From Paragordius varius (taxonomy: Eukaryota > Animalia > Nematomorpha): a stretch of 64,000 nucleotides of DNA. Below the pieces are notes generated by a model. That model saw nothing but the letters and a program-made list of their open reading frames with translations. It was not told where the DNA came from and searched no databases. The stretch is from positions 496,001-560,000 of the forward strand of contig OZ176060.1 of NCBI GenBank assembly GCA_964247055.1, given 5' to 3'. Positions 1,462-59,238 of the stretch are shown piece after piece. Made by a program: the position numbers and the translations under genes. Within the stretch, counting starts at the first letter, position 1. Each line of letters opens with the position of its first letter.

Positions 1462-3136
1462 ATGGGTATTCATATATTATCAAATACTTTCAATTAAATT
1501 TATTTATTATATCATATTTTATTTAATTATATATTTTTTGTAATAAAATGTAAAAATAATTTGTTAAAAAAAAATATATATATAAATCGTGAAAATTAAA
1601 TTCCTAATCTATTTAATGTTTTAACAAATACTCATCATAAAACATCAAGTTACCTAATCTTAATATTAATAAACGTTTTTATTAAAATAATTGGTAAAAA
1701 TATTAAATTGGGTATAATAAAATATTCTTTATCATTTTTAAAACAACTCCGCTTTTTTTGAGAAAAATATTAAATTATTTTTAAACTTTTAATTAATCTT
1801 CCATATAATAGTTGTTTCATTTGTGGGGTAAGTTGTCTTGATAAAAATAAATTTATTACTAATCCGCGACTTTCTGCAACCTTTTATTAATATTAGATAA
1901 TTTTTATTTTAAGTCAAAATTTTAGATTAAATCTAATACTGGTAAAATCCAAAAACGTACAGATATAAGGGAAAAAAATATCTAACAGCCATACTTTATA
2001 TTATAACACTAATGATTTACAAAATAGGGAATAGAGATGTAGATGAAAATATAATGAATTTAAGATATCACACATAATATTATAGTTTATGTTAAAAAGT
2101 ATTAGTTTTATAAACTATGATTATTTTATGTTTTTACACTTTGTCTGTATATTTTTAAACATTACTCTATGATTTATGTATGCATCATCATTTTATAGTA
2201 ACTTGTTATAATTTGATTGCAGATTCCTTTATTGTGTTGTTAGGATTTTTTGTTTCTTCATTGATAACTTGAGTTTTAAATTACATTTCTGAAAATTTTT
2301 TTAGATTTCGGCGACTCGACTTACAAACTTTGGTGTGATCTCGATACTAAGCTTTATAAAGTAGAACTTAAAAATCAACAAGAACAGTATATTAATCCAT
2401 GTAAACCGGCATCTTTTATTGATTTATTGGAAAATGAAGATTTTACAAACGATGATTTACGGAGAATTTGGAACGCTTCTTTCCATAACCTTTGTTATTA
2501 AAGGGAACATAAAAACGAAAATGCTCTACAAAATAATAACTTAAATAATGAAAATAAAAATGATACCAAAACCAACAAAGATACCCTAGTTATTGATTTG
2601 GTAGGAGAACAGACAGAACTTTAGATCTTTCTCTGAAAAAATCACCAAAAAATGTAAAAGATATAAGCTCGGTATGTTCAAACATTGATGCCAGTAACAT
2701 AAGCTTGAATGATATTAACAAGCTATTTGATGAGAGTAACAAAACAAAACCTATTGGATCTTTAAACACTTCAAAAGTGGGTAATAATAATCGATGTATT
2801 CAATGTGATAAAATTTATAAGGATAAAAGCCATCTGGCCACACATGTTCGTTCTATTCATGAACAGGTTAAATATTTGTGCAAAATTTGTTCAAAAATAT
2901 TTTCTAACAAAGGCATTGCTAGGCACATTAAGTCGGTTCATGAGAAAATTAAACATGAATAGTCCGATTTGTAAAATTAATTTTTCTCAAAAAGGCTATC
3001 TTGGAACACATATTCAAGCTGTTCACAGAAAAATTAAACATGAATGTCCGATTTGTAAAAAGGAAAATACAAAAAAAAAGCAGTCTCAGCCATATTAAAA
3101 ATGTACATAAATGAACACGTAATTCAACATATATGA
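1462..3136 (+). pseudogene. C2H2 zinc-finger family paralog ZF1 (N-domain + PLDLS region + ~4 fingers), disrupted
   Basis: Exon 1 ends ATG-G (1462-1465) with GT donor at 1466. Acceptor TTTTTAG ends at 2304. Exon 2 reads DFGDSTYKLWCDLDTKLYKVELKNQQE. TAA in place of Leu (CY*), 1-nt loss in the EPLDLS codons and an extra base in HEC. Fingers CIQC..HVRSIH and CKIC..HIKSVH lie in ORF 2705-2962; later fingers are in ORF 2805-3098. Confidence 0.85.
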
Positions 3137-5084
3137 TAATTATAAAAAATAATGTTTAAATATCCATTTCTCAAATAAAAAATGTAGAGTTTCATATTAT
3201 TTTATGAAGAGGTTTTGCAAAAAGCATCGTTAAAGATATTTGGAATGCTTTTTGACCGGTCTGTTCTGGAGTTTTTTGTAGATTAAAAATATACAAATTC
3301 GAATATAAAAAAAGTTTAAATAATAGATCCTAATAGTTAATAACCATTTATATTTACACTTTTTGTATTTTCACCTCTTAACTTCTTTTATGCGACAACT
3401 TTTTTTCGTGTACTGCCATTATAAATAAAATTTATTTTTAGCTTTTCGAAATAGATTATGGAAAAACAGTACTTAATTTATAAATTAAATATTATTTGCC
3501 GATATTACATAAAATACTGTTTTTAAACGTTTTAGCTCGATTATTTAATGAAATTGCTTAAATATTTAAACACAGCTTTTTTCAAATGTATACCTTATAT
3601 ATTTTAAATAATATTAAATTTTTAACTTTTATACAAATAGAGATTGATAAACTTAAAATTATAAAAATATAATTTTGTGTAAAATAGATGGCGTGCATTT
3701 ATCTTTTTATTTTACTATTTTCTTTAACAAATATAGAGAAACCACACTAGACAACATTTGTTTCTTGAGTTTATTTATAAACTATATAATATATTTTTAA
3801 AAATTTTATTTTAAAACTTAATTAGTTGTAAATAACTAAGGTTTGGTGAAATCGTTCACCTTTTTAATAGAATCATACTTTAATTTTTATTTCAATAAAC
3901 AAATATATTATCATAAAAATGGAATAATTCGGTTTTCATTAAATAAGTAAATAGCCTGCTTATAAGAATATTTCTGTAATTTTTGACTAATTATTTATGG
4001 TAATTTTTTATGCTTAGCAATATATAATAATTGGCCAAATTTTAAATTATACACTGTTTAAATTTGCAAACACATTCCAATTTTTTTTGTAAAAATGTAA
4101 GGACACCTTGATATCAACCTCCCACCATTTTTTTATAATCAAAATTAAAAAATTATCCATCACTTTAACGATCAATTGTATAATTTTCAGTTTTTTTATT
4201 ATATTTGATGGTTAACGTTTATATAATATAACCTTTTTTAAAATAATATAGGCATCAATAACGTAATAAAATGTTTTTCAGTGTAGTACAGTGGTTAAAT
4301 AACCTAAATATTATATTTCAATGTATGAAATATTGGTGAAACAATTAACTATATATTTAATAATTGTAATTAAATAATTTACATGATGATTTGTCTTTAT
4401 GTGGCGTTTTTTTACTTTTTTTACGTCATTGTTGTTTTTAGCCATGAAAAGTAAAAAGGAATGGTAAAATGTTAATAATTTTGAAGTGTTTTATTAAGAA
4501 AGAAGACAAAATTTTAACCTTCATTTTCGCAAAAGATATGTTTTAATTGAAACTTAAGCGATTAGATATAAATTAGTATCAATTTTTTATAAATTTCTAA
4601 TCATTTAGCTCCTCATGTACCAAATAAAAAATATGGATTTATAAAATTTTGATTTTTGTAACTTGTATGGAAATCAAACAATCTAACATTTATACGGAAA
4701 AATAATGGGTGGGGTGATAAAAATTTTTTTTTGACTTGACTTGCAAGTTTTTCAAGTCATGGCTTGCTTTCATGTGATAAAAAAAATTAAAGGGCACTTA
4801 AGTCAAGCAAGAAAACTTGAACAGGAGGTGATAAAAAATCATATGATTAAGAAAAACTTAAAGATATTGCAAGTGTGGTATAGGTAAGGTGACCAGATAT
4901 TTTGAAGGAAAAAGCGGGACAAATCTGAAAAGGGGGGTCCAACCAAAAAAATTTTATACAAAAAATTTATTGTAATATTTATTTATTTTTAACACAAATA
5001 CATTATAAATATAAAAAAATTTGTACCCTACAGGTTTTTGTACCTTATTCAATAAATTTACATTGCACGAACAAAGGGTGAAGT

Positions 5085-5800
5085 GATTGTAATATTCTAG
5101 AAAAATAAGACGAAATCATCACAAAGTGCGCTTGATGCAAGAAGCGGCACAAAATTTTTTTTAACAATTTAGCGAATAATCTTAATCAAAACATTATTGG
5201 TAGATCAACGCTATCTAAACAGCTACTGATTTGTTACCCCTGGATGTGGAAAATATAGATGTTTAAATGCTTGGATATTGTAGAACTGTTGGCTAGTTCT
5301 TTTGCCAGCGATTGAAATATATATGAAAATGTGATCTCCTAGAATCCTATTTTTTATCACAGGACAAAGGTCAAAATTCCAAGTCACAAAATGTTAAAAT
5401 AATTTTTTACCATTACCTAACATAAAGCATCCAAAAAAGCAAGCATTGAATAGCTAGAATATAAAAATGTTTTATACAAACAGAAACGATTATTTGGAAG
5501 ACAAGACGGTGCACAATGACACTTTTTATGAAATCTCATTATTAAATAAATATATTGAATGAAAACTTATATTATGGACAACAGAAAAAAATACGTAGGA
5601 TAGAAATGGTTAAAATAATCATTGTTAAACAAATTATGTTCCATACAATAATATTTTAATTGTAGAATTTGCATTATCTTTACCTGAACCACTGCTATTG
5701 AACACGTACAGTAAATTAAGTAAGGACACGGAATCAAATTTAAATGTTGAATAAAAGCCATTTTATGTGTTCATAAATTTAACAATTAAGTAATTTTGTT
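5085..5800 (+). pseudogene. Inverted, internally deleted second copy of the hAT transposase inside the same element
   Basis: Plus-strand blocks match the minus-strand transposase. 5181-5200 vs 6914-6933 (LNQNIIG). 5345-5368 vs 6679-6702 (24 nt identical, SYFLSQDK). 5662-5686 vs 6052-6076 (VEFALSLP). 5732-5751 vs 5972-5991 (20 nt identical, SNLNVE). Confidence 0.85.
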
Positions 5801-5842
5801 TATTTTTTAACATAAAAACTTTTATAAATATAAGAAAATATT

Positions 5843-7666
5843 TTATTCTTTGGTAAATTTTTTGTTTGAGTGAATGCGTTTTAGCAGATTGTCATCATTT
5901 TTTAAAATATGGTAGAAGTCTTCACAAGAATTTGTCAAATTATATTTGACAGATAAAATGGCCTTCAAAGTTTCAACATTTAAATTTGATTTTTCCGATG
6001 TCCACACCTGATTTACTGTGGAAAAAACGCGCTCAGTAGCACCGTTGGTTCCAGGTAAAGATAGTGCGAATTCCACAATTTTTAAAATAGTATTGTATGT
6101 AATATAGTTGGCTTCAAAATGATGAAATATTTCCAACCATTTCTTTTCTACTGTATATTTTTTTTTGTCCATAATTTAAGTTTTACATTATTAATATATC
6201 TTTTAACTAATGATACTTCAGAGAAAAGATCATTTTCTGAAAGATCACTTTTTGAGATTTTTTTGGAGCAGATATAATCAAATGATTTTTGAACATCGCA
6301 CCAATTAAATTCTGATTTTAATGTTATCCAATGAAAATGATCAATTTCATTGAATTGCGTCGTCCAGTCTTCCAAATAAACTTTACAGTTTGTATAAAAT
6401 TTTTTATATGGTACAGGATATCTTGGCGATTTATTAAGCCTTGTTTTTCTAAATTATTTATTGTATTGCGGATGGTTAATGGAGTAAAATTATTTTCTAA
6501 CCGTTCTTGACATTGGAATTTCAGGTTACTAACTTCATTGGCTACTTCGACTGCCGAAATTTTGTCACCTTCAATAAATTTAATAACATTTTGAAAGAGA
6601 GAAGCTTGATTATGTAAGAATTTTAACCATATTTTAGAAGAATCACTTTCAAAAAACTTTTTTTAAAGTTGTAGGACATTTGTCCTGTGATAAAAAATAG
6701 GATATTAAAGGATCGATCATACATTTATAAAATTCTTTCGCTGGCATAAAAGCTAAGCAACGAGTTTTACTATATCCAAGAAGCGTCTCAACACGCACCG
6801 TGTATATATAAAAATAGGAATATATTTTAACAACTACATTTTCCACATCTAAGGGTAACAAATCAGCAGCTGTTTGAATAGCGTTGTATATTATATGCGC
6901 TGCACACCCAACGCCAATAATGTTTTGATTGAGATAATCTGTTAATTTATGAAGAATATTTTTTGTTCCTCTTCTTCCTTTTCCACCAAAGTTCGTATTG
7001 GTGTTGTCAGCGCAATATGAGATAATTTTGTCTTTTAAATTATTTTTTTCTAGAATATGCATTATTGAAGTAAATATTATTTCAGAATTTTCACCGGGTA
7101 GGGAAATTAAATCTAAAATTTTAATTTTTACTCCGGTTTCTGAATCAAAATATCATATCAAAGTAGGAAATAATTTTGTTTCATGGTGATTTGAAGCATA
7201 GAGTCTAGGGAAAGAAATTAATTTTTAGCAAATCTTTTTGTATTTCAGAAAAAGCATATGGCGAAAAAACATTGCACACAATGGCTTCAGCCTTTGTACG
7301 GGCGCATGTAATTTTTTTTTGAATAACGTGCGAATAACCTGTGAGGTACAATCCATTGAACGAAATGAATGGCATGCGTGAAAGGAAAACACGCCCTCAG
7401 CAAGTGCTAAATTCTTTTCTTGCTCTCCAAAAGCGGTTTTTCGAAATAAATCGCTCATCTTGTGAGATGATGCCGTTATAATTAAACATTTTTGATGTTT
7501 CTGTGTATCAATATGCTTTGTAATGTCATGTTTGCCGCCATGTGCCAGGATGATTTCCCCATCGCATATAAAACATTTAACAGACGATTCATTCTTCGTT
7601 TTTTTTATTGAAAGGAAAATCTTTCATTAATTTATCATTGAATTTCCAGCCTCTTTTTGTGTTCAT
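5843..7666 (-). pseudogene. hAT transposase, frameshifted into several ORF fragments
   Basis: N-terminal BED-like CFICDGEIILAHGGKHDITKHIDTQKH (~7500-7590), AEGVFSFH...SFRSMDCTS, catalytic-region YCADNTNTNFGG, CAAH (CxxH), LLGYSKTRC (TRW variant), and C-terminal dimerisation motif LSLPGTNGATERVFS. Confidence 0.92.
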
Positions 7667-7683
7667 ATTTATAAACTACTATC

Positions 7684-7853
7684 AGTATAATAAATGTTAT
7701 ATTACCTTAATTTCTGGAAAAAGCGTGTAAGGTATCGATTTGTAATATTAATTTGAATTTTTTATAATGTTGGCAAGTTTTAAAACTAAATATTAGTATA
7801 ATAAATGTTATATTACCTTAATTTTCCGGAAAAAGCGTGTAAGGTATCGATTT
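7684..7853 (+). repeat. ~58-bp direct repeat (2 copies) upstream of the hAT transposase start
   Basis: AGTATAATAAATGTTATATTACCTTAATTT..GGAAAAAGCGTGTAAGGTATCGATTT at ~7685-7740 and ~7795-7853. Confidence 0.85.
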
Positions 7854-12570: not shown

Positions 12571-13115
12571 ATAGCTTCTAACAATTCTTTAAAAAATATT
12601 TGATTTCAATAAAAATAATTGACAGATTGTTTCTTATAAATAAAATAAACAATCATTAGAGACATTTAAATCACAGTAATAAAAACAAATATATTTTTGT
12701 ATAAATTTTTTTATTATATTTAATTTAATTATTTATATTATTAGAAACTAACAAATTAAATTAAATTATAGTTTGGTGATTTAAAAATTATTAAGATTTG
12801 TTTAGTTTTTAAAAATAAATCAAATCAATATACTTTAAGTATTGGTTAAAAAATTATTTTTATGGTTAAATTATTTGTATAATAATAACTATAAGTCTAA
12901 AGATTTTGAATTAAAATTAAACATATATTATTAGTTAGAATATAAATTAAAAATATTTATTTTGAAAAATTATTTCATTTAATTATGTTTTAAACCATAA
13001 AATAATTTTAAACAATAAAATAAATATATGAAACGACAGACGATTTCTTTTTTAACGGTTTTTATTAATTGTCTGCTTTTTTTTATTCGAAAAATTATTC
13101 AAATTTATTTGGAAA

Positions 13116-15232
13116 ATGGGTATATATTTAATTTATGTAATTTAATATTTTATAATTATTTTAAAATATTAATAATTATTATAAAATATAAATAATTATT
13201 TCATTTTTAATTTTTAATATCCAAATAATTTTTGATTTTAATATTAATATTTTTAAAACTCATATTTCTGAAAATAAAATAATATGTAAAATCTATTAAA
13301 TTAATTGATATATATTTTATGATTTAATTTAATAATAATTATCCTGTTTTAAAATTTTAGAAAAATGAAAATATAGATAATATTTTTATATTTGATAATA
13401 AATTTGTGATTTTTTCTGATTTTTTTATTTTTATAGTATGAGTAAGTTTATATTGCTAGAAAGTATAATTATTGCCATAGAATATGCAGCAAAGAGAATT
13501 ATTATTGGCTAAAAAATATTCTAGAAGTATTAATTACTCATACTGTGGTTGATTATTTTTTGATTAAATTAAATATTAATTATCCTGTTTTTGTTAGCTT
13601 ATTACATAAATTATAAAATTAAAATAGAAGATATTTTACATTATTTTTAGGATTTAAGCATTTTTTAAATTATTTTTTATTATGATATAAATTTTTATCA
13701 ATAATTAATTTAAAATTCATAAAATAAATTTTATAATATCAAACAGTAAAAATTATATTTATAATCTATTCCAACGTTTGAACAATAAATTCATTATTAA
13801 ACAAGTTACCTTAAATATTAAAATTAAGTTTTTATTAAATAAGTAACTGGTAAAATTATATAAATGAATCTATTAATATTTATAATTATACTTGTGTTTT
13901 ATATTTATATTAATTAAAACGACGCAGCTTTTAGAAAAATATTAAATTGTTTAAATTTTTTAAATTTTAATTACTCTCAATATAATATTTTTTCATTAAG
14001 TGTTTTATAATATCAATCCAGCTTTATAAGCGACTTTATGCAACCTTATACATTAAAAATTGAAATTATACGGATAAAACGTAAAATCAAAAAACAACCA
14101 TATTTTTAATTCTTCACTTTTTTGAATATAACTTTATTTAATATTGCAAAGTGTGAAGTAGATATATATATTACAACAATTAATTTGATATATTACTATC
14201 ATTTAACTAGCTTATAGAGGAAAAATTAAGGTTTAAAAAAATATGGTTGTCAAAAATATTTGTCTTTATTACGTTTTGTCCGTATAATTTTAATTTTACT
14301 GTATAAAGTAAAAATAATATTATTTAAGTTTTTAGTAAATTTAATTACAGCTCATATGCAAAGGTATTCATTAATATGAAACTAATGTTTTTTATGATTT
14401 AAATCATTTTTAGGGTATGTCTCGTTTCGTCATTTATCAATTATTTTTATATTACATTTCTAACAATGTTTTTAGATTTTGGTGATTCGACTTACAAACT
14501 TTGGTGTGATCTCGATACTAAGCTTTATAAAGTAGAACTCAAAAATCAACAAGAAACGTATATTGATGATCCATCTAAACCGACATCATTTGTCAATTTA
14601 TTGGAAAATGAAGATTTTACAAACGATGATTTACGAAGAATTCTGAACGCTTCTTTCCATAACCTTTGCTATTTAAGGGAACATAAAAGCGAAATTACTC
14701 AACAAAATAATATGATGAAAAAAAGAATTTTACCAAAACCAACAAAGATACCCTAATTATTGATTTGGCAGGAGAACAGACAGAACCTTTAGATCTTTCT
14801 CTAAAAAGGTCACCAAAATATGTAAAAGATATAAGCTCGGTATCTTCAAATGTTGATTTTAATGGCATAAGCTTGAATGATATTAACAATTTATTTAATG
14901 ATAACATTAATAATAATGTAAAGCCTATTGAATATTTAAATTCTACAAAATTGGGTAATAATTTTCGATGTATTCAATGTGCTAAGATTTATAAGGATAA
15001 AAGCGGCTTGACCAATCATATTCATTTGGTTCATGAACAAATTAAATATTTGTGTAAAATTTGTTCAAAAATGTTTTCTAACAAAGGCAATCTTGGAAGG
15101 CACATAAATTCAGTTCACGAGAAAATTAAACATGAATGTCCGATTTGTAATAAGAAATATGCCAAAAAAGGCTATCTTGCAAAACACATTGTATCCGTAC
15201 ATAAATTAATCGATGGGTGTAGTACTAATTAG
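13116..15232 (+). pseudogene. C2H2 zinc-finger family paralog ZF2 (N-domain, EPLDLSLK, 3 fingers); single frameshift, possibly intact
   Basis: ATG-G at 13116-13119, GT at 13120, CTAAC branch-like site at 14460, AG at 14474-14475. ORFs 14466-14756 and 14765-15232 join into one ~253-aa protein if one base is added at ~14712. Fingers CIQC/CKIC/CPIC each end HxxxxH. Confidence 0.88.
14051..14301. mobile_element. Tc1/mariner-pogo-like MITE in the ZF2 intron
   Basis: TA|CATTAAAAATTGAAATTATACGGATAAAACG ... CGTTTTGTCCGTATAATTTTAATTTTACTG|TA. Confidence 0.8.
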
Positions 15233-18711: not shown

Positions 18712-19616
18712 TTATATATGTTGAATTACGTGTTCAATTATGTACATTTTAATATGCTTGGTGAGATTGCCTTTTCCAGTATATTTAACGCAAATCGGAC
18801 ATTCATGTTTAATTTTCCTGTGAACACTCTGAATGTGTGTTGCAAGATTGCCTTTTTGAGAAAAATTAATTTTACAAATCGGACATTCATGTTTAATTTT
18901 CTCATGAATTAAATAAATGTGTTTAGCAAGAGAGCTTTTGTCAGAAAACAACTTTGAACAAATTTTGCACGGATATTTAATTTGTTCATGTACAGATTTA
19001 ACATGTGTGGCAAGATGGCTTTTGTTAGAAAACATCTTACGACAAATTTTGCACGGATATTTCACTTGTTCATGGACAGAACGAATATGTTGGGTCAAGC
19101 CTATTTTATATATATATATCTTATCACAATGAATACATAGATAATTGTTGGCCAATTTTGAAAAGTTTAAAGATCCAATAGATTTTGTTTTGTTATTAGC
19201 ATCAAATAGCTTTTACTATTCAAGCTTATGTTACTGGCATTGTTTGAACATACCGAGCTTATATATTTTACATTATTTGGTGATTTTTTCAGAGAAAGAT
19301 CTAAAGGTTCTGTCTGTTCCTAAATCAATAACTAGGGTATCTGTGTTGGTTTTGGTATCATTTTTATTTTCATAGTCTAAATTATTATTTTGTTGACTAT
19401 TTTCGCTTTTATGTTCCCCTAAATAACAAATATGGAAAGAAGCGTTCAGAATTCTTCGTAAATCATCGTTTGTAAAGTCTTCATTTTCCAATAAATTAAT
19501 AAATAAGTCCGGTTTAGATGGATCATTAATATACGTTTCTTATTGATTTTTGAGTTCTACTTTATAAAGTTTGGTATCGAGATCACACCAAAGTTTGTAA
19601 GTCTAGTCGCCGAAAT
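18712..19616 (-). pseudogene. C2H2 zinc-finger family paralog ZF3 (5 fingers), exon 2 only, disrupted
   Basis: Acceptor AG at 19618-19617, then DFGD* (TAG) and NQ* (TAA) stops, and a frameshift before PLDLS. ORF 18712-19155 encodes five fingers with EQVKYP/EKIKHE linkers. No same-strand exon 1 found upstream. Confidence 0.88.
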
Positions 19617-20807
19617 CTAAACAAATTTCTTAGAAATGTAATTTAATAATTATCAATAATTAAACAATAAATCTTCACAGTCCAAGAAATGACTTAAAAA
19701 TCAGTTGTAATAGATTTATTATTGTAACTATAAAAATTATAAAACTTGGCAAACATTAAACAATACCGTAATGATAAAAACCAAATAATAATGTTAAAGC
19801 ATTAAGAAAAATATTTTTTTATAGAAGAAAACCATAGTTTATTAAACTTAGACTTTTCTACACAAACCATTATATTATATATGATATCTAAAATTGATTA
19901 TATTAACAATTATATCTTTATGGCATATTTTGCTAAAAAAACATGTGTGTTCCAAAAAAATATAAAGGGCTGTCAAAAAATATATTTAAGTTTTTTCCCC
20001 TTATAGCTGTACATATTTGGATTTTATTGAAATTAGATTTAGTTTCAAATTTCTAAATTAAATAAAAATTATCTAATATAAATGTAAGGTTGCCTAACGC
20101 GAATTCGTAAAAGATTTTTATTAAAACAATGTACCCAAAAAACGACAATCTTATAACGAAAGATTAATTGAGATTTTGGAATCAAAAATTGAATTATTTT
20201 TCAAGTTAATTTAATTAAATTAAAATATGCAAAATAAAATTAAAGTATATTTATTATTATTATAATTATTATATTATATAATATATTTTCAGTTCTTTGT
20301 CTAATAAATCGTTATGAATATTAATATACAGGCTGATGTTATATATTTTTACATTAAAATAGATTTTGAATTTCATTTTTACGATTTAAATATATATATG
20401 TTTTCAAAATGAATATTAATAATTGACAATAATCATTCAAAATTAAAAATTATATTAAAAATACAAAATAAAATTTCTAATCCCAATTTTGGTTTATATA
20501 TAAATAAACTATAGTAAAGAATAATTTTAAAATGATAATTAACATTTATTTAAATTACAAAAAAAATTCCATTAAATTAATTTATTACAAATTATTTCTA
20601 AAATTAAAATTTTTCATAAAAATTATTAGATAAATAAAATTAAATATATAATTTAAATAAATTAAAGATATAATATTTTTAAACCATAAAAATTTAAAAA
20701 AACTTTGATTTAAATATAAAATGAAAGGACAGACGATTTTATTTTTAACGGTTTTTTTTAATTGTCTGCTTTTTATTTATTCGATAAAAATTCAAATTAT
20801 TTCGAAA

Positions 20808-23028
20808 ATGGGTATGGTATTTTATTAAAATTTGTAATTTTAATTATTTTAAAATATTTACATATAAATTAATTTTATTAACTTTAATACTATTATTTAT
20901 AACTCTAATTTTAAGAAATAATAGGTAAATTAATTTAATTAAATTGTTTAATTTATGGAATATTTTTTTGTAATTTAATATTCATTATCTTGTTTTAAAA
21001 TTATTCTTAACTATAGTTTATATATATAAACAAATAGATAATATTTTTGGTATATTGTAAATTTTGAATTTTATTTTGTAATTTATAAAATAAATTTTAA
21101 TTTTGAATGATTATCGTTATCAAATTTTAATATTTATAAAATAAAATTTTATGATTATTAAATATATACATTTAAATCGTAAAAACGAAATTCAAAATCT
21201 ATTTTAATGTAACAATATATAACATCAGCCTGTATATTAATATTCATAACATATTGGACAAAGAACTGAAAATATTTAAAATAAAATATTATTATAATAG
21301 TAATAAATATACTTTAATTTTATTTTGCATATTTTAATTTAATTAAATTAACTTGAAAAATAATTTATTTTTTAATTTCAAAATCTCAATTAATCTTTCC
21401 TTATAATAGCTTTGCTTTTTTAATGACTTTTGTTTCAATTAAAATATTTTACTAATCCACGACTTTATGCAAAATAGATAATATTATTTTAATTAGTCAA
21501 TTTGACATTAAATATTCCAATAAACCTAAATTACGCAAAAAACTAAAATATGTTTTTGAGAGCCATAAATATTTATATATAATCATGGATTTGATTTGCA
21601 ATATAGATCATAACTAAATGTTATTATAATCGATTCTAGATATCGCATGCAATATAATAGCTTATGTTGAAAAGTTTTAGTTTTATAAACTATGGTTTTC
21701 TTTAAATATTTTTGTTTATGCTTTTACATTTTTATACTTTGGTTCTTATCATGTCTGTATTGATTATTAGCAAAGTTTGTAATTTATATAGTTACAATAA
21801 TAAACCACTGAGTTTTAAGTTCTTGGACTTGTGAAGATTTATTGTTTCATTATTGATAAGTTGGCTTTTTAAATTACATTTCTAACAAATTTTTCTAGAT
21901 TTCGGCGATTCGACTTACAAACTTTGGTATGATCTTGATACCAAGCTTTATAAAGTTGAACTCAAAAATCAACAGGAAACGTCTATTGATAATCCATATA
22001 AACCGACCTCCTTTTTTTAATTTATTGGAAAATGAAGACTTCACAAATGATGATTTACGGAGAATTCTGAACGCTTCTTTCCATAACCTTTGTTATTTAA
22101 GGGAAAATAAAATCGGAAATCTACAAAAGAATAAGAAGATGAAAATAAGAATGTTACCAAAACCAACAAAGATACCCTAGTTATTGATTTGGTAGGAGAA
22201 CAGACAGAACCTTTAGTCTCTGAAAAAATCACCAAAAAATGTAAAAGATATATGATCGGTATCTTTAAACATTGATTCCAGTGACATAACTTGAATGATA
22301 TTAACAAGCTATTTGATGATAGTAACAAAACAAAACCTATCATATCTTTAAACTTTTTAGGGTAATAATTTTCGATGTATTCAATGTGATGAGATTTATA
22401 AGGATAAAAGCGGCTTGACCAAACATATTTGTTCGGTTCATGAACAAGTTAAATATCCGTGCAAAATTTGTTCGAGAATATTTTCTAACAAAGGCAATCT
22501 TTCTAGGCACATTAGTCGGTTCATGAGAAAATTAAACATGAATGTCTGATTTGTAAAAAAGAATTTACCCGAAAAGGAGATGTTGCAAGACACATTCAAT
22601 CTGTTCATGAAAAAAATACATATAACTGTATTTGTAAAAAGGAATATACTCAAAAAGGCAATCTCGCTAGGCACATATATTCATTTCGTGAGAAAATTAA
22701 ACATGAATGTGCGATTTGCAAAAAAGAATTTAATAATGTCATCATGCAACACACATTCAATCTGTTCATGAACAAGTTATGTATCCTTGTCCGATTTGTA
22801 ATAAAGATTTTTATCGAAAAAGCTATCTTACCAAACACCTTCAATCTGTTCATGAAAAAACTAAACATGATTATCCCATATGTAAATCGGAATTTTCTAA
22901 TAAAACCAATCTTGCATCGCACATTCATTCTGTTCACGGGAAAATTAATGATCAATTCAAGGATATGTAAAATGGAATATACCGAAAAATACAATCTTAC
23001 CAAGCATATTAAAAATGTACATAGTTGA
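20808..23028 (+). pseudogene. C2H2 zinc-finger family paralog ZF4 (~8 fingers), multiply frameshifted
   Basis: ATG-G at 20808-20811, GT at 20812, CTAAC...TTTTCTAG acceptor ending at 21898. Extra T in the run at ~22010, PLDLS codons partly deleted. Repeated CxxC..HxxxxH units at 22375-23025 are spread over several frames. Confidence 0.88.
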
Positions 23029-29620: not shown

Positions 29621-32600
29621 AATATATCATATCCTACATATGTAAATCAAAACAATATTTTCAAAAAAACTTTAAATTTTTTAGATATGAGATCCAAAAG
29701 TCCCAAATTTTTTCGTTCTTCTAAAATGGGTGAGTGCTTTTGAAATAAACGCAAAAATGGCGAGATTGCGCTATAATATTTTTTAATATAAAATTTTGAT
29801 ACCAAAAAAATCCAATTTTTGGCGAAATTTTGTGGAAACGTATTTCATAATATTTTTGAGGTATGATGGAAACATTAAAATTTAAAATATTATAAAAACA
29901 CTTTTTCTACCTAATTCGCTGATAATAAACATTTCTATCACCTGACAACTTTGATTGTAAAATCTGTTTTTTTTAAGTTATAAAAATTTATTTAGAATCC
30001 CAAAAATTTGCAAGCAAACAAACCTCTATAATTAAAATTTTAAAGCATGTTTTTAACTAATGAATAATATATAAAAAGTTTTTAATATAAAGAGTTTTAA
30101 TACCCTTTCCATAATATTAATTTAAAAAACGAGACATAATTTTCGAACAAATTTTTTTCAAATTAACAAACCTATAAAAAAATTTAGCATGTATATTAAT
30201 TGAAAATAGGAGAGCCATATAATTAATTAAACAGGTGGCATATTTCAAATTATGAAAGTATTCTGAATATAATAGAGGTTAAAATAAGGTAACAGATGTT
30301 TAAAAAACACCTATTATTTGCAAGGTATAAATATTCACCTTTTTTTACTTTTATCAAGTTATTAATTTTTATCCTATATATATTACTAAACTATTACCGA
30401 TATGTGTGTTTAAGTCACCGATATATAAATTTTTGGCTAAATATAAATAATTTCTAATAATTTAATCATCAAAACTAATTCAAATGTTTCAAAAACCAAC
30501 TAAGAAGACTAACTCGAATCAAACTAGCCTCTTTAAATAAATCAAAAATTTGAAAAATTATGTTGAATTCAGCTTTTTATTGCTTTTATAACACTAGACA
30601 ACAAATTTTAACTTATACTGCCATTCTTGCAAATTTAAAATTTATTTCATTAAAGTACATAATTAGTATATTTGAAAAGAGAATTGCTTTAGCAATCAAT
30701 ATTTTTTTGATATTAGGTTTATCGATAATTTTTGGCCCCGATTTAACATTAAACTCGAAATTTCAAAAATTTAAAGTTTTAGATATGAAGCCATGTATTA
30801 TATATCATTCGAAAGCAAAAAACTGCATCTTTTAAATGGTAGTAAGTCATTTAAATCAATCGGATGTAAAAGTTATTTGGATTTTAATGGTCGAAATTTT
30901 CAATCCTTAAATAAGTCAGGAATTTTTACAGACAAACTAATTTGAAAATCATATAAATTATTTTATTATAATTATTAGGGTTATATTAATGTTTAATTGT
31001 AAAAAAATGTTTGAAAATGCTTTTGGTTTGCTTTTTTAATACAAATTATTAATATCAAAATTATTTAGCGCATACTAAAATGCATAGTTATAACTGTAAA
31101 TTTATTACATAATGGCGATAAAAGATCAAAAATACCTTAAACTTTGTTTTTATCTTAAAAATTTCGAAATTATCAGCATTGTAAAGAAAATAAATTAATA
31201 TTGATGAGATGGTAGTTTTTAAAAAACAAAAAACTTAAAAATGGCTGTTTTGAGTGACATAAAAGCAATAAAAAATGTTTTAATCAAAAAAACTTTCTTG
31301 TGTTATCTTTTTTGGACATTCATCTCCATCTAAACAAAGTTTGAGCTATTTTCATCCATTAGTTTTAAAAATATAATAATTAAAAAAATGCTCTCGCTTC
31401 GCGCGTTTGTCGCTCTGTGTGTCCAATATTAACTGTCGATGTAATACATATTAGTATACATTTTATAGAGTTTTTAATACTCTTTCGAATGATATATTAC
31501 AAATGGGCATTACTTGTATATTTTCAAAGAAAAACATTTTTTGGTAAAATTTTGATAAAGAGGGCGCATAATCTTAAATATCAAAATTTCATATTTACTG
31601 TTAAAATGATATTAAATATCAAAAAATGCAAAAAACTCGAGTGGCAGAAAAATTTGTTGTCTAGTGTAATAAAAAGCAGACAAATAAAAAAACTGTTAAA
31701 AAATCGTCTGTCCTTTCATTTTATATTTAAATTGAAGTTTTTTCAATTTTATGGTTTAAAAATATTATATTTTAAATTTATTTAAATTAAAATTATCTTA
31801 TTTAATTTTTTACATAAAATTTTATTGAATAATTTGATAAATAGATTACTTTTTTTTGCTAATTGTCAATCATTTATTGACCTAAAGATTTTTTTATAAA
31901 TATTTAAATAATACAAAGTATTATATAAAATATTTCTTAATTGGAATCGCAAAAAAGAGGGTATGATATGTTATTATCATGATTAAATAAATACCGCCCT
32001 TTTATTAAAAAAAATATTTTATTTTTCAAATACTTAAAGTTTTCAGGCAACAAAATTTTAAGGTCAGAGAATTTCGGCTGATTTTGAATAAATTAAAATT
32101 TAATAAAATTAATAATATTGAGAAAATATTTTTAAATATAATCAAATTATATATTATTTACAATAAATTATCATATATATTTTGGTATATACAGTAAAAA
32201 ATATAGATATTCAAACAAAACTTCAATACAAAAATTTTTTGGAAAAATTTACCATACTTTTTCAAAATAGCATTATAAACTAAATATGTTTTTATGATAA
32301 ATTATGTTCGGTTAGACATTTCAATTACCTCAGAATTTGTATAAAAGTTAGAATGGGTATACACAATTTATATTTAACTTAAATTATAAGGCGACAATAT
32401 AATCCAAATATTGATGGATACTTTTAGCTTCATTGAATTAGGGAAAAAGTGGTTTATAATATCTTAGAGCCTAAGCCACATCATGCTTCAAAATAGAAAA
32501 AAGTAAGCCTCAAGTAATTTTTATTAGAATTAATTGTTACACAGAGTATAATTATTTTCGAAAGAATTATTTTAATGCTATAATCACTGAGATGTCCAAC

Positions 32601-43010: not shown

Positions 43011-44204
43011 AAATACCAAAGCCATATAATTAATTAAACAGATGGCATAAATTTATAATAATATTTCGTATACTTATAGGAGTGAAAATAAAGTAACTGT
43101 CTTTAAAAAAGTATTCTTTGCAAGGTATAAATATTCACCTATTTTTAGTTTTATCAGGTTATTAAGCATAACATTTTTATCCTATGTATAATACTAAACT
43201 ATTACTAATATGTCTGTTAAAGTCACCTCAGAACATAAATTTCTGGCTAAATATAAATATTTTTTATTAGATAAATCATTAAACTATTTTTTTTAAAACA
43301 AATTAATAAGACTAACTCAAGTGAAAACTCGCCTTTGTCGTATATATTACAGAACAAATTTGATTAATCAAATCGACTAACTTTTATTGAATAAAAAGTT
43401 TTTATATGTACCATAGGTAGACTTGTTTTACTTAAACATATATAATAATAGTTTCAGTTGAATATTATACTTATATATAGTACAGTATATGTTTATTTTG
43501 AAATCATTAGCTTGATATAGAAAATGCATTTTTAACAATAAATTTTTTAATATAAATATTTATCTAAACACGCTATTCTTTAATTTAGAATAGGGTCATA
43601 GTTATTCTTTACTAAATATTTTTTGCTAAATAATTATTTTTATTTACTAAACTAAATCTTTTTATTCGCGTATCAAAAATCCTTAAACTTAAAAATTTGC
43701 TGAGAAACACAGTTTAATAAAAGTGAGTAATTTCGTAAAATAAACATTTATTTTATAAAAGGCAGTTTTATTAGCAAAAATTACAATATTATTACAAAAT
43801 ATGACGCAAACACTTTTATATTTTGGAATTTTATAATTTAAAATAATTATTTGATTTTTTATTAAAGAAGGATAGACTTTACTCCATATTTTTCTGTCTT
43901 TTTTATGTCAATAAATACTTGACTGTTGCTTTTCAAAAAGTTGTGATAACATAAATTTAAATGATTCAAAAATGTTATTTATTAAATATAATTTAAAAAA
44001 AATTTAATAACCATACTTTATTATTCACATGGATAAAAAATTAGTCAATAAATTTAAACTTATATGAATCATAGCTTAAGTTTAGAAAATTTAATGTTAT
44101 TTGAAGTAAATGAAAAATATCAAGTAAATATATGGTATTATTAGTTAACATATATTAATTTGAAAATTATTTTTCACTATAAAAAATATTGAAACAAAAA
44201 TTGA

Positions 44205-44306
44205 AATATAAAATGAAACGACAGACGATTTCATTTCTTAACGGTTTTTTTTAATTGTCTGCTTTTTTATTTATTCTTAAAATTTATTTTTGTTTTAAAA
44301 ATGGGT
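44205..44306 (+). promoter_or_regulatory. Orphan copy of the exon-1/core-promoter element
   Basis: TATAAAATGAAACGACAGACGATTTCATTTCTTAACGG...AAAAATGG|GTAT (ATG at 44301-44303). No same-strand exon 2. Confidence 0.7.
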
Positions 44307-46086
44307 ATTTATATTATTTATAAATATATAATATTTAGTTTTATTTATAATTATTCGTATATATTAGATTAACTTTAAATCTTAATGTTTTAACTTTTAT
44401 AATGTATACATAGGCCATCTTTTTTATGTTTAGTATTGTATTTATAAAATAAGCTCTTTTAGTGAATTTAAACAAAACTCACTAGGAATTTATAAAAAGT
44501 TATGTTAGAATGTTAACTGACCAATAATTAAATTACGTGACTAAAAAATAATTTTGGTATGCTAAAAACTGAATAAACAAGATTTTTGTTATATTTGTTT
44601 TAAATGGTAAAATGTGAAAAGATTTATAACACAATCAATTTTATATTCTATAATTTCAATTAAAGAGCGTATAGAGGAAAAATTAGTTTTCGAAAAAGCC
44701 TGGTAGTCTTTTAAAATAATTTGCCTTATTATGTTTTAAATGTATATATTAATTTTAATTTATAAAATATGAAATAAACAAATATCCGATCATAATTAAT
44801 ATTTTCAACTAATAAGCGCGGCATATAATTTTATTGAAATTTGACAAAAGATAAAGAAATAATTTACGATTTCGGATTTATAAATATACTATAATGAACG
44901 ACCTGCGTAAATATTAACAATGCGTACTGACGTAAAGTTTTTTGATAAATAATCAATTATAATCTTTTTTAATATATTTCTTTCGTTAATCTATAATATT
45001 TTTTACCATGTATCTAAATTTTGATATTATTTTAAGTCCAATGGTTAAAAAATCATTTTTAAAAATATTTTTTTCTATCGAAGATTAAATCAAGCTTACT
45101 TTTTAGATTATGGCTAAATATAATATTTGTTAAAATAGTTCGAGAGCCATACCAGTTCGATAATTAAGAATGTAAAAAATTAACAATTAAATATTAATAT
45201 TAAATTTGATTAAATATTTTATTTCGATATCTTAACCATATAAATAAATCGTATAAATCCAACGAGAATTATAAATATTTATCAACCAATAAAAGCAAAA
45301 ATTGATGATATCAATCTAAATTTTCAAATTAAATATTTCCTGATATTTGTCTAATTATATGAGATACTATTGTAGGATAAATTATATCTGGATATATGTC
45401 ATTTTTAGTTTATATTCATGTTTAGTTCTACTGGTAAATTTATACTACTTTTCATTGTTGAAGTCATTTAATATACCATTTTGTATTGTAATGCAAATGT
45501 TTATCTTTATAAAAAATATAATACATCTATATTGCCAAATTTTTTAAATATTTTATTAATCTTAGGATTTTTATGCAAATATTTTATAGTTATACTTTCT
45601 TTGCTTAAAAGCTTTTTAAAAGTGTAATACATAATAGGCTGAAAAGTTTAAGCTGATTTACAATAAAAAATTGTGGCTCGCTGATTAAACCGTAGAGTTT
45701 ATTTGTTAAATAGAAAACTAAGAGTATATAAATAACCCCGCTTTATTGTTGCCCACCTCACATTATTTTAGGCCAATTGGCTATACTGTAATGTGTGAGT
45801 AAAAAACAACAAACGGTGTGAAATAATTTTTTTTTGATATTTACAACATTAAATTTGTTTTATATATTGACAAAATTATTTATTTGCTTTTATGTAATTT
45901 TAGAAAAATTAGGGTAGGGATTAGTTGGAAACCGAAACTAGTATGCATTTATCCTATATATATACTTTACCACTAAAATTATTTAAAATAATATTTATGT
46001 TATTATTTATAATTTTATGGACAAAATTTATTTTATATCATACGCTACTGTATTGTTATTTGGCCAACATTAAAGTAAGCACTGGA

Positions 46087-46346: not shown

Positions 46347-46759
46347 TAATTGATTGTAAAACAATCATTTATTATTTAGAAAATCAAGATATAAAAATTA
46401 TGGTTTTCTCGAAAGAAAAAAATTTTTGTTAATTTTTACATGTAGTGGGTATAATTTCGTTTTTAATATAATTTAGCTATTATGTGCAAAAACTCCAGAA
46501 ATTACCCGTCAAATGGCAAAAATATTTTATTAACCATCTAAATTTAATTTTAAAACTATAATTTTAAAATAAAATTTATATTTGTGTTTAACATGCTACA
46601 TGTATTATATTATGTTTATTAAATTAGGGTGTTCAATTGTGTACATTTTTTATATAAATAGTAAAATTATATTATGATTAAACTCGTTACTAATTTGACA
46701 TTAATATTTAATTTGTTTATGAAAAGATTTAAAATGCCTAGCAAGATTATTGAAAATCG

Positions 46760-47300
46760 GACAATCATGCTTTCTTATAAACAGTCTTATTATCTGAAAT
46801 AAAATAGTTTTTTTGAGAGAAAATTCATTTTTATTAATTGGACATTCATGTTAAAACTGTTCATGAACAGATTGAATATGTATGGTAGATTGCTTTTTCG
46901 AGAAAAATATTTAATACGTATCGGGCAGGGATATTTTAATGGTTTATGAACACCCTATATATGTGATGCAAGATGTCCTCTTTGAGTAAATGCTTTTATT
47001 TCACATTTTGAACATTACTGTTTACTTTTTTTAATAAAGATTTAATATGCGTTGGATATTTAACTTGTTCATGAAACGAAATATGTGTGGATTAAAATGT
47101 CTACCCTTATAAATTTTATCATGTTCAGTGCATCGATAATAATCCTTCATTTTTTGAATGTTTAAGGACTCTATAGATTTTGGTTTTGCCATTTTAGTGT
47201 TAAAATATATAATATATTATATCATTAGAATCAATATGCTTTTTAAGGTTCAAAATTCTGTCTGCTCTCCCCTCCAACTAAATTATCTCAAGATTATTGT
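46760..47300 (-). pseudogene. Degenerate zinc-finger family relic
   Basis: Plus strand shows TTGGACATTCATG, TGTTCATGAACAGATTGAATATGT, GGATATTTAACTTGTTCATG and TTCTGTCTGCTCTCC, which are reverse complements of the ECP, HIQSVHEQ, EQVKYP and GEQTE codons. No open frame. Confidence 0.65.
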
Positions 47301-50199: not shown

Positions 50200-50570
50200 T
50201 TCGGAATTAAAAATCTTGCAACACACAATCAATCTCATAAGCAAATAAAACAGGATTGCAATTTTAAAAAAGATTTTTTTGTAAAATCCAGCCTTTCCCC
50301 ATATATTGGCTCTGTTCATGAACTACTTAAATACTTGCAAAATTAATGTTTTCTTACAAAAGTTATCTCGCAATACAAATCAAATACGTACATGATCAAA
50401 TTAAAAATTAATGACCGATATGTAAAAAAAGGATTTATTAAAGAGGAAATCTTGCAACACATATTCGTTCTGTTTATGAACAGTATTAACATAATTGTCC
50501 AATTAATAAAATGATTTTCTCTCAAAACCCTATTTTGCTCCACTAAAGCTCATAACATTATAAAGCATTA
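50200..50570 (+). pseudogene. Degenerate zinc-finger relic; inverted paralog at ~56060-56300
   Basis: CTGTTCATGAAC..AAATACTTGCAAAATT and CACATATTCGTTCTGTTTATGAACAG (HIRSVYEQ). 56100-56300 is its reverse complement. Confidence 0.6.
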
Positions 50571-51894: not shown

Positions 51895-51896
51895 TT

Positions 51897-54695: not shown

Positions 54696-54823
54696 TATTA
54701 TAAAATTATGGACAAAATTTTTATTATATCATACGCTTCTGTATTAATATTTGGCCAACAATAAATAAAGTACTATACAGTAAAAATCAAAATAGTACGG
54801 ACAAAACGTAAGCATATATACCA

Positions 54824-54902: not shown

Positions 54903-55771
54903 TTGTTTTGATGAATAATATCAAAACAAGATATAAAAACTTTGAACCATTATCAGCAGAATATTAGGATATTATTTTTAATTAAAAACACAATTATTGA
55001 ATGACAATTTTTCCAATTATATTCCAGTACACAATCATTAATGACTTATTCTTCAAAGGTTATATTTTTGTAATTTGCGATGTTTTAAGATAATATTTTA
55101 TATTTTATCGATCGTCCGCATTAATATTTGCGGCCTTAAAATATCTATAGTTACGGAGCAAATAACAAAATTTATAAACTATACCGTTTTTATCTCAAAG
55201 GTCGTTTAACACTTCATATTGGATCTTACACAAATTTTACCCTAATTTTATTATAATTATCATTTGGTCCAACGTGGCCCTCCGAACTGTGTATCTTGAT
55301 ATAGAAAATGCATTTTTAAAATGGTACAACATTCTTATACAATATTTAATGTAAATATTCTGCACACCACTTTTCAAAATATCATACGAAATTTTTAATC
55401 AAAAATCTAATTTCTTAAAACAACGTTTTTGTTAGAGTATTTAAAATTATTAGAGTAAAATTTTGTTTGCTTAATAATAAATTTTAATAAATTGACTAAT
55501 TTCGTATATGCATTTATTTTAAAAAGGTATTTATATGCAAAATGTATAATTTTATTACAAAATATTATTAATATACTGTTACTCATTTTTCTGCCTTTTT
55601 TATGTCATTCATTAAAATAAAATTTAAACTTAAAAAATTTAGCTTTTGCAAGTATTTATAAAGTTTTAATGAAAAATATCAAGTAAATGTATGGATTTTA
55701 TCAGTTAAAATATATATATTATTTCATTATAAATATTTTTAACCACAAATTAATTGAACAACAAAAATTTA

Positions 55772-55875
55772 AATATACAATGAAACGACAGACGATTTCA
55801 TTTCTTAACGGTTTTTTTTAATTGTCTGCTTTTCATTTATTCGAAAAAATATTCAAATATATTTAAAGAATGGGT
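55772..55875 (+). promoter_or_regulatory. Orphan copy of the exon-1/core-promoter element
   Basis: ATGAAACGACAGACGATTTCATTTCTTAACGG...AAAGAATGG|GTAAT (ATG at 55870-55872). Confidence 0.7.
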
Positions 55876-57304
55876 AATTATATTAATAAATATTTTTTTA
55901 AATATATAAAATTTAATTATTTTATTTTAAGTTATTTGTAAAAATTTGATTAACTTTCTTTATTTTACATCACCGGTAACATATAAGCCATCTTTTTTAT
56001 GTTTAGTATTGCTATGAATAATAACCTATTAGTTAATTTAAACAAAACTCCTATTTGATATATCCTTTTTACATATCAAACATTAATTTTTAATTTGTTG
56101 CGAGATAACTTTTGTAAGAAACATTATCAAACAAATTTTGCAAGGATACTTAACTAGTTAATGAACAGAGCCAATATATGGGGAAAGGCTGGATAATAAA
56201 AAATTTTTTTTACAAATTGCGCATTTATGTTTTATTTGCTAATGAGATTGGTTGTATATTGCAAGATTCTTACTACCGAAAATTAAGCCAGATTACATAT
56301 ACATTTTTAAATATAAAACTTCATATAAAACATATTCTATATAATTAAAAAGTAAAATAATCCGACAATTAGGTTTATAAAAGTTATCGATTAAATTCGA
56401 ATAAATTATATGGGTTAATATTTACTCAAAATACTAATCTAATCTTTAGTTAATTGACATTTAGCCCAACAAAAGCGAAAACTAAAACGTTTTATTATAC
56501 AAATATTATTTATTTACTTACCTTTACGAAATATTCTCATATGATTATTCAGATATATGTCATTTTTAATTGCCACATACACTCTTTTATATTTTTTAAA
56601 TTTTTATGATTACATTTATAGTTTTGATTGATTACTGGTCTTTTTTAAAAAGAGTGAAACGTATAAATCACAATTAAATTGAAAATGCGAACGCTGAAAA
56701 ACCATAGAGCCTATTTGTTATATAGATATAAAACTTAGTATATACAGTATCCATTTTATTGTTGGCCACTTCACATTATTTTTAGCCAATTGGCATAGAG
56801 TAACGTGTAAGTAAAAACAACAAACGGTGTGAAATATATATTTTTCCTATACCACAACATTAATTTTGTTTTTTATGGACAAAATTTTTACGCACAAATT
56901 GTAAAATTTATAGAGAATTTATTTGAAACAACCATACATTAATTCTCCTCTAAAACTTATTTGATCGTAAAATACATAATTGATTATTACATTTAACTCT
57001 ATTTTACAATCTGCGGTGTAAACAATAAGTTATAATTTAGAAAATCAAGATGTAAAAGTTATGGTTATTTGTAAGAAATAATATTTGTCCTTATATTTTT
57101 ACATTTTGTCAGTATAATTTCGATTTTTACTGTAATTCTTTTTTATCTACAAAAGAAAACTCCAAAACAAAGCGATCAAATAGCATTTATATTATTAACG
57201 ATGCATTTTGCCATAAACGTCTTCATAAAATAAAAGAATCTCATTAACTTATATTTGCGAAATGGATATTAACAAAATGATATTTAATGCTACATTTAAT
57301 ATAT

Positions 57305-59238
57305 CAAAATTAAGTGTTTAATTATGTACATTTTTAATATGCTTGGCAAGACTGCCTTTTTGAGTAAATTCTTTTTTGCAAATCGGACATTCATATTTAA
57401 TTTTTTTATAAGCAGCTAAATATGTGTTGAACGATAGCATTTTTGATTAAATTCTTTTTTACAAATCGGACATTCATGTTTTATTTTCTCATGAACCGAC
57501 CTAATGTGCCTAGCAAGATTTCTTTTGTTAGAAACCATTTTTGAACAAATTTTGCAGGAATATTTAATTTGTTCATGAACCGAGCGAGTATGTTTGGTCA
57601 AGCCGCTTTTATCCTTATAAATCTTATCACATTGAATACATTGATAATTATGATCCAATTTTAAAGAGTTAATAGGCTTTGTTTTGTTTTCATCAAATAC
57701 ATTGTTAATATCATTTAAGCTTATGTCATTGGAATCAACATTTGAACATACCGAGAAAAATCTTTTGTAATTTTTGGTGATTTTTTTAGAGAAAGATCTA
57801 AAGGTTCCGTTTGTTCTCCTACCAAATCAATAATTAGGGCATCTTTGTTGGTTTCGGTATTTTTAAAATCTAAATTATTTTTTTGTTGAGTATTTTCGCT
57901 TTTATGTTTCCTTAAATAACAAAGGTTATGGAAAGAAGCGTTCAGAATTCTCCGTAAATCATCGTTTGTGAAATCTTCATTTTCCAATAAATCAATAAAA
58001 GATGCCGGTTTATATGGATCATCAATATACGTTTTTTGTTGATTTTTGAGTTCTACTTTATAAATTTTAGTATCGAGATCACACCAAAGTTTGTAGGTCG
58101 AGTCGCCAAAATCTAAAAAAATTGTTTGATTTGATTATAATATTTTATAAATGGTGAGACGAAATGACATGCGTTAAAAAGGGTTTAATAAGTTAACAGA
58201 CATTAATTAAATATCACTGATACAGTAAAAATTGGAATTATACTGACAAAAAGATATATGTTATTTATAAAAAGACAGCTATACTTTTTTAAACATTAAT
58301 TTTTTCAAAATAATTATTTACTTACGTTGTGATATATACAATTGAGTGCATAACCAAACATCTCTATATTATACTTTACAGGTTAAAACATTCAGTTATC
58401 ATTTAAATAAATTTTAAATAGTATAAGAAATTTTTTTATATTTTACGTTTTGTCCGTTTAATTTCAATTTTTACTGTAATATTTGAGAAATTTTGCAAAT
58501 ATAACTTTAACATAAGCAACTGAAAAATAATAATTATCTGTTATTAATATAAGGTTGCCTAAAGTCGCATATGGTAAAATATTTAAAATATGAACCCTAA
58601 CAATGAACTATTTGAAAGATTAATTAATTTTTTAATTATTTAATATTTTTCTTAAAACCGGTGTTATTTTTATTAATTTAAAAAAATAAAATATAACTAG
58701 AATTATTATATAATCAATTTATATAATATTACCAATAAAAACGTATATAAATTTTAATATAAAGTATTTTAGATTTTTAATGATTGGTATTATTGGAGAT
58801 TATAATAATTTTAATTATATAATATTTTTTGATATTATTTCATGAATTTTAAATTAGTTATTGATAACAGTAACTATATATAAAATAAAAAATAATTAAA
58901 AAAATTAAGAATTTCTCTAAAAAATAATCTTATAATACCATAGTTTTTTGAATTTAGTAATAACATACTATGTTAATATTTAAGATAATTTATATTAAAT
59001 TAAATTACAAAAATATAATGCATTAATTGAACAATTTAATTTAATTAATTTATAATATTTTTAAAAATTAGATATATAAATAAGGATAATAAAATTAATA
59101 ATTAATTTATATATATAAATAATAAAATAAAATAAATAAAATATTAAATAAAAATAAAAAAATATATACATGAAATAATTAAAATAATATAATTAAATCA
59201 TATGTATATTTAAATTAAAAAATAAAAAATATACCCAT
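57305..59238 (-). pseudogene. C2H2 zinc-finger family paralog ZF5 (intact N-domain and EPLDLSLKK, ~4 fingers), disrupted distally
   Basis: ATG-G at 59238-59235, GT at 59234, acceptor AG at 58114-58113. Exon 2 is open from DFGDSTYKLW through PLDLS. There is a 1-nt loss at the A-run 57756-57760, and TAG after HI in finger 3 (57416). Confidence 0.88.
58223..58476. mobile_element. Tc1/mariner-pogo-like MITE in the ZF5 intron (254 bp)
   Basis: TA|CAGTAAAAATTGGAATTATACTGACAAAA ... CGTTTTGTCCGTTTAATTTCAATTTTTACTG|TA. Confidence 0.85.

Follow-up and report, generated by a model that had tools for sequence, protein, structure and literature searches.

A lineage-restricted family of zinc-finger genes with an orphan N-terminal region and a predicted CtBP-docking motif in the genome of Paragordius varius

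A 64,000-nt stretch of the Paragordius varius genome (the window; C11:496001-560000 of a 110.6-Mb, 44-contig assembly, with window positions given below as w) contains five copies of an amplified C2H2 zinc-finger gene, in which a conserved N-terminal region (N-region) is followed by the segment IIDLVGEQTEPLDLSLKK and then by the fingers. We explain these genes, with moderate confidence, as members of a lineage-restricted family of predicted CtBP-docking, sequence-specific repressors that evolves by birth and death together with gene conversion. We have high confidence that the family, the outline of its gene model, its orphan domain and its pattern of selection are real. That members act by CtBP-dependent repression is a prediction from their sequences, which we regard as reasonably probable.

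The N-region is about 110 amino acids long and shows 90% column-by-column identity over 23 copies, among which only the cysteines C10 and C64 are invariant. Searches here and below were made with individual exons (exon 1, exon 2 and the exons of CtBP), not with spliced proteins. Two N-region translations matched no Pfam family at E up to 1, including KRAB (PF01352) and ZAD (PF07776). As the test of orphan status, an N-region profile was compared with 1.84 billion (1.84e9) representative proteins, and this found two tandem-repeat proteins only and no KRAB proteins. The two proteins (P0018 and P0019) were rejected as relatives, because they match 30-40 residues in many stretches. A word-based search with the whole exon gave finger-region matches only, at 40% identity or less, and the best feature scores in the ESM Atlas for the N-region (0.76-0.79) were at noise level. 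The supposition of an earlier note on this DNA, that the N-region is novel, is thus borne out: neither the Pfam search nor the profile search of 1.84e9 proteins connects it with a transposase or any other known family.

Of 23 open N-regions, 17 have the exact PLDLS sequence, as do 9 of 10 strictly intact genes; the sole exception among the latter is the locus L021 (LLDLS), and variants occur mostly in broken copies. The extended motif EQTEPLDLSLKK is conserved as a whole and has basic residues after it, which we would liken to those of E1A and of the PIDLSKK peptide in PDB 1HL3. An AlphaFold2 model, weak overall with a mean predicted local distance difference test (pLDDT) of 48, places three strands and two helices in residues 6-76 and gives a pLDDT below 50 to residues 71-113, which hold PLDLS. 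In this model PLDLS is a separate linear motif about 30 residues downstream of a compact orphan domain, not a part of that domain. The earlier note had CtBP recruited "through" an unrecognized effector domain; that wording merges two separate modules, since PLDLS falls outside the folded N-domain in the predicted model.

The partner that the motif suggests is encoded in the same genome, in line with the recruitment proposed earlier: Pfam-guided genome searches found, at C7:996-1003 kb on the minus strand, a CtBP orthologue whose PXDLS cleft is conserved. Its exons lie at positions 6491-6745, 4879-5046, 4174-4416, 1079-1774 and 1-429 (minus strand) of the segment L060 (C7:996000-1005999). In PDB, CtBP1/2 chains are the only ones to which the first coding exon aligns (E 1e-19), and this exon is identical to human CtBP1 at 38 of 42 residues over RPLVALLDGRDC...VAFCDAQ.TQEIHEKV, a segment that we take to line the PXDLS cleft of CtBP1 and in which the residues aligned with human A52 and V66 are retained. 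The PDB matches of the second exon are likewise to CtBP only (E 1e-13). The best-kept part of this CtBP is the docking cleft, which fits a role centred on PXDLS partners. PF02826 matches on C2 and C6 were also considered as CtBP and were rejected, being PHGDH-like and GRHPR-like. A complex prediction with three separate CtBP exon chains and the PLDLS segment scored 0.01 and counts neither for nor against docking.

Across the genome the N-region has 58 matches, with E down to 1e-88, at about 48 loci: 35 in C11:105-643 kb, 10 in C10:3.46-3.59 Mb and single ones at C11:1.83 Mb, C2:15.16 Mb and on C29. The C29 copy (L045, C29:1-2500, on a 15.7-kb contig) is identical to the copy at C11:641 kb (L012, C11:639959-643345) over about 460 aligned nt; it probably represents either an uncollapsed haplotig or a duplicate that arose very recently, and locus counts are slightly inflated accordingly. 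At about 10 loci the main exon is uninterrupted over 266-324 amino acids and ends in a finger (...HIKNVHN*). With locus labels denoting the genomic loci of family members, the intact loci are L002, L004, L006, L010, L011, L021, L022, L023 and L025, and L003 and L008 are borderline. Most intact exons have four fingers, and some have five to seven. Intact members lie, for example, at C11:113.5-116.9 kb, C11:412.2-415.6 kb, C11:635.4-638.7 kb and C10:3580.5-3583.9 kb. Both the intact members sought elsewhere in the genome and the clustered birth-and-death family that had been supposed, with its constant orphan N-region and variable fingers, were thus found.

Selection was examined in 11 intact or near-intact exons, by the pooled pairwise ratio of nonsynonymous to synonymous substitution rates (dN/dS; NG86) and by maximum-likelihood (ML) estimates of the same ratio, omega (GY94+F1X4, fixed tree, p against omega = 1), the N-region including PLDLS in the latter. 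The N-region has a pairwise dN/dS of 0.26 and an ML omega of 0.27 (p 8e-16), and the finger scaffold 0.36 and 0.31 (p 2e-15), the ML value covering all non-contact finger positions. The linker gives 0.64 and 0.88, not significantly different from 1 (p 0.6), and the DNA-contact positions -1/2/3/6 give 1.39 and 2.16 (p 0.015). The ranking of regions is identical in the two methods, and pairwise dS is about 0.3 in all regions. Purifying selection on the N-region with PLDLS and omega above 1 at the contact positions, both anticipated in the earlier note, are therefore seen with ML codon models. When positions are arranged by finger register, the highest values of nonsynonymous divergence (pN) fall at -1 (0.42), +2 (0.39) and +6 (0.37), and in a permutation test none of 20,000 random draws of 24 non-ligand finger columns matched the contact set. 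The 46 fingers have 38 distinct four-residue recognition signatures, with a combination of its own in each gene.

On the evidence of conservation, the gene is predicted to have two exons, and we have high confidence in this outline: a putative exon 1 of about 125 nt ending in ATG-G/GTAT (the slash marks the exon boundary), an intron of about 1 kb and one large exon. The large exon is never Met-initiated, and its conserved reading opens at the acceptor TTTTTAG/ATTTYGGNGA. About 0.85-1.4 kb upstream of it there is a block ending in ...TTTGGAAAATG/GGTAT, which was found at 25 of the first 30 loci. The last 125 nt or so before the GT are 90-100% conserved across 24 copies, and conservation collapses directly after GTAT. 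Only the reading that joins ATG-G to AT stays in frame into the large exon, giving M-D-F-G-D-S-T-Y-K-L-W. This upstream element of about 125 nt equals the coding N-region in conservation and also occurs alone, without the gene; it holds the inverted pair ACAGACG...(about 30 nt)...TTGTCTGC.

On the basis of these sequences, an intact protein would begin with M-D, the start codon being split off at the end of the conserved exon 1, and would continue with the orphan domain of about 70 amino acids, an acidic, Asn-rich spacer, the conserved segment with PLDLS, a near-neutral linker and 4-7 fingers. The fingers would read DNA with a set of contact residues particular to each paralogue. PLDLS would dock into the animal's own CtBP, at the PXDLS cleft, and so may bring co-repressor activity to the bound sites. 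The N-domain could have a second role, most plausibly self-association or the binding of another partner, as in ZAD, SCAN and BTB, which is speculative. The genes themselves would have spread by tandem and segmental duplication, exchanged sequence by gene conversion and been lost by pseudogenization.

Several results weigh against this explanation, and some of them bear on two competing ones. The first set concerns mainly the link to CtBP. The NAD (nicotinamide adenine dinucleotide)-binding part of this CtBP is strongly diverged, with Asn-rich insertions and with the catalytic-loop TPH changed to TPG, and for this reason its co-repressor activity is not to be assumed. The aforementioned structural model, built from 23 near-identical sequences, was weak, and the omega above 1 comes from 24 contact codons and from one tree for genes that recombine. 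The genes may encode real DNA-binding factors in which PLDLS does not act via CtBP, or which are not repressors at all; an architectural or insulator role, as in many ZAD zinc-finger proteins (ZNFs), would be one possibility, the N-domain then being the module that does the work. The divergence of the dehydrogenase domain would agree with this, as would the fact that the N-domain is the most conserved part of the protein, and PxDLS-like strings can be non-functional. What is conserved here, however, is the whole extended motif with the basic residues after it, in a low-confidence and probably disordered stretch, and the PXDLS cleft as the best-conserved part of CtBP suggests that selection keeps partner docking. 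We consider this alternative unlikely.

The second set concerns whether the family is alive. Breaks affect about 80% of loci (some 37 of the 47 copies aligned), and sequencing runs that we guessed to be RNA contained none of the sampled family words. Within their first 480 nt, the 37 copies scored as broken, with borderline L008 among them, have 30 frameshifts and 13 nonsense substitutions; just 10 of the frameshifts lie in homopolymer runs of 4 or more. Assembly errors in homopolymers were rejected as the cause on these two counts, and the broken copies are real pseudogenes. Micro-introns were rejected as well, because intact paralogues read straight through the positions concerned. The ratio of nonsynonymous to synonymous changes (N/S) in the N-region, counted against the family majority, is 1.09 in intact and 1.18 in broken copies, the references being a neutral expectation of about 4.2 and 2.6-2.9 in the linker. 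Since the two classes do not differ, the selection signal proves past constraint and not present function; constraint in dead copies means either that the breaks are recent or that conversion spreads pre-selected variants. All this would be expected if the family once worked and is now dead or dying, so that the "intact" copies are merely the least-hit survivors and are not expressed. We regard such an end state as unlikely. About 10 frames of 270-320 codons are open despite a dS of about 0.3 and a G+C content of about 22%, which by a rough estimate would happen rarely under neutrality; the exon-1 ATG is kept in all intact copies where exon 1 was found, and PLDLS in all but one; and the broken copies have about one quarter of the lesions estimated for fully neutral end branches.

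The way in which copies multiply can be read from their flanks. In distant paralogues similarity is confined to the unit: it covers the exon with about 300 nt of 3' flank, both ends of the intron and some 200-300 nt before the donor. The blocks common to close pairs are longer and run past the gene, for example positions 2497-4078 of L047 with w1-1583 at 85.5% identity, and such shared flanking blocks are expected from segmental duplication. In a star-like tree of 47 copies, those from C10 and C11 are fully intermixed, with 10 changes of the contig label against a mean of 9.3 after shuffling. Between C11:636 kb and C10:3559 kb (L049, C11:632000-641999, positions 3733-6436; L063, C10:3553000-3562999, positions 5175-7785), a core of about 2 kb is about 100% identical, the edges of the unit are 80-90% identical and the flanks have no homology. 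This profile of core versus edge is that of a gene-conversion tract between the clusters on the two contigs. The C10 copy of the pair has an exact deletion of 84 nt, corresponding to one finger, which shows how finger number changes. That the unit of about 2.7 kb is itself mobile, as a transposon or a transposon-carried gene whose protein serves the element, is very unlikely: homology confined to the unit in this pair, solo upstream elements scattered over the window and the transposon-rich region would suit it, but about 46 of the roughly 48 loci lie in two clusters and are not dispersed, close pairs share DNA past the unit, the identity profile is that of gene conversion, no similarity to a transposase, a reverse transcriptase or a known transposon protein was found within the unit, and neither terminal repeats nor target-site duplications were seen in a search that was not exhaustive.

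Animals have repeatedly built fast-evolving repressors from amplified ZNF families whose N-terminal module is constant, and the present family, considered as a predicted repressor family, can be compared with several of them. With the KRAB-ZNFs of tetrapods it shares the constant N-module, the variable C2H2 array, tandem transposon-rich clusters, birth and death, and faster change at -1/2/3/6. It differs from them in lacking a KRAB domain, and the candidate co-repressor link runs from PLDLS to CtBP, not to TRIM28/KAP1. Its short arrays comprise 4-7 fingers, in which the spacing is H-x4-H and the linker is of the EKIKHE type, in place of TGEKP; one exon holds both N-module and fingers; and with about 48 loci the family is small. 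The ZAD-ZNFs of insects likewise show a lineage-specific clustered expansion and an N-terminal domain of about 70-90 amino acids. ZAD, however, is a zinc-binding dimerization domain with four cysteines, whereas the family here has two invariant cysteines and no Pfam ZAD match.

The FiNZ family of cyprinid fish carries a 28-amino-acid sequence encoded by a separate exon; zebrafish has about 700 members, their finger arrays are long, and no cofactor was known at the time of the description (PMC10547256). It resembles the present family in its orphan lineage-restricted N-terminal sequence, two-exon gene, clustered copies (several hundred in FiNZ) and positive selection (PMC10547256). The N-region here is much longer, at about 110 amino acids, with a recognizable CtBP motif in it, and FiNZ has roughly fifteen times as many members. 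The profile search of 1.84e9 proteins gave no FiNZ relationship, and a direct comparison with a FiNZ model was not part of it. None of the defining domains of KRAB, ZAD and FiNZ was thus found in this family.

A PLDLS-type motif in the non-finger region of a C2H2 protein is also found in ZEB/Zfh-1, Krueppel, Snail, KLF3/8/12, EVI1 and ZNF217. These CtBP-recruiting repressors are ancient, conserved and mostly single-copy developmental regulators, whereas the family here is young, amplified and of high turnover, and has an orphan N-domain. By analogy, we use them as the working model, and they would be the closest one for the mechanism. Full-text literature searches turned up no amplified PLDLS-ZNF family. 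To our knowledge, the cofactor is unknown for most amplified families of this kind outside tetrapods; in the present case the sequence itself points to a likely cofactor link, namely a conserved PLDLS together with a CtBP in which the docking cleft is the best-kept part. If this link is true, a short linear motif can replace a dedicated effector domain in amplified ZNF families, and the orphan domain of about 70 amino acids, which is under strong constraint, joins the folds worth solving. A bolder proposal is that the family constitutes a fourth independent ZNF surveillance system beside KRAB, ZAD and FiNZ, which silences lineage-specific transposons via a hard-wired CtBP motif instead of a KAP1-type adaptor and whose N-domain is a new oligomerization or effector fold. 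We think this proposal doubtful as a whole, and our confidence in transposon surveillance by the family, taken alone, is also low.

We now describe the copies in the window, which has a G+C content of about 22% in a very AT-rich genome. PLDLS and fingers were searched for by a six-frame scan, and copies were mapped by stop-to-stop translation and by tblastn with an intact paralogue. All five copies were found where the earlier note had placed them, and the positions at which it began four of them are exactly the exon-1 ATGs: the putative start codons lie at w1462, w13116 and w20808 on the plus strand and at w59238 on the minus strand, in the context ...AAAATG/G GTAT. The large exons start at w2305, w14476 and w21899 (plus) and at w19616 and w58112 (minus). 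Three matches to the 28-nt end of exon 1 were obtained against 0 expected, and together with the 58 genomic matches of the N-region these exclude chance. A regular expression detected 14 C2H2 fingers, all within the five copies, and Pfam PF00096 matched the fingers at w14711-15229 (E 1e-13) and w18715-19212 (E 1.2e-23). The architecture of N-region, PLDLS and fingers attributed to these copies is indeed shared by the five, with the reservation that all are broken by stops and/or frameshifts and that only three keep an exact PLDLS (w14786, plus; w19307 and w57804, minus). None of them is able to make a protein, and the five are dead members of the family.

Copy 1 (plus strand) has its upstream element, or putative exon 1, at 1340-1465, ending in ATG (1462-1464)-G, an intron at 1466-2304 and a large exon at 2305-3136 with N-region, damaged PLDLS and fingers; it has a stop at 2499-2501 in the N-region, a frameshift in the PLDLS codons and more stops and shifts in the fingers. 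Copy 2 (plus) comprises an upstream element at 12995-13119 with ATG at 13116-13118, an intron at 13120-14475 and a large exon at 14476-15232 with the exact PLDLS at 14786-14800 and three fingers; a single frameshift lies near 14715-14730, and the finger that usually comes last is absent. Copy 3 (minus) consists of a large exon only (18712-19616), without exon 1, and has PLDLS at 19293-19307 and 4-5 fingers, with 2 stops and 2 frameshifts within its first 480 nt. The most decayed of the five is copy 4 (plus), in which the upstream element at 20680-20811 (ATG 20808-20810) and the intron at 20812-21898 are followed by a large exon at 21899-23028 with remnants of about 8 fingers; PLDLS has been deleted (EQTEPLVSEK), and there are 1 stop and at least 4 frameshifts. 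In copy 5 (minus), the upstream element lies at 59235-59360 (ATG 59238-59236), the intron at 58113-59234 and the large exon, with four fingers, at 57321-58112; its N-region and PLDLS (57790-57804) are in frame, and its two frameshifts both come after PLDLS.

The relics that had been reported besides these copies are also present, as fragments without the full architecture. Three are old scraps of fingers with stops, namely a linker with fingers at 46686-47204 (minus) and finger arrays at 50209-50537 (plus) and 56041-56271 (minus); three others are solo upstream (promoter or exon 1) elements, at 31668-31886 (minus), 44182-44348 (plus) and 55707-55925 (plus). The transposon neighbours that had been listed were confirmed in part, by a hAT dimerization domain and by the reverse transcriptase and integrase of a long terminal repeat (LTR) retroelement. 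The hAT domain is at w5846-6175, within a decayed hAT transposase spanning 5846-7623 on the minus strand, and the LTR-retroelement remnant at w51866-54458 (plus) has an open frame of 614 amino acids (RVT_1) followed by an integrase core.

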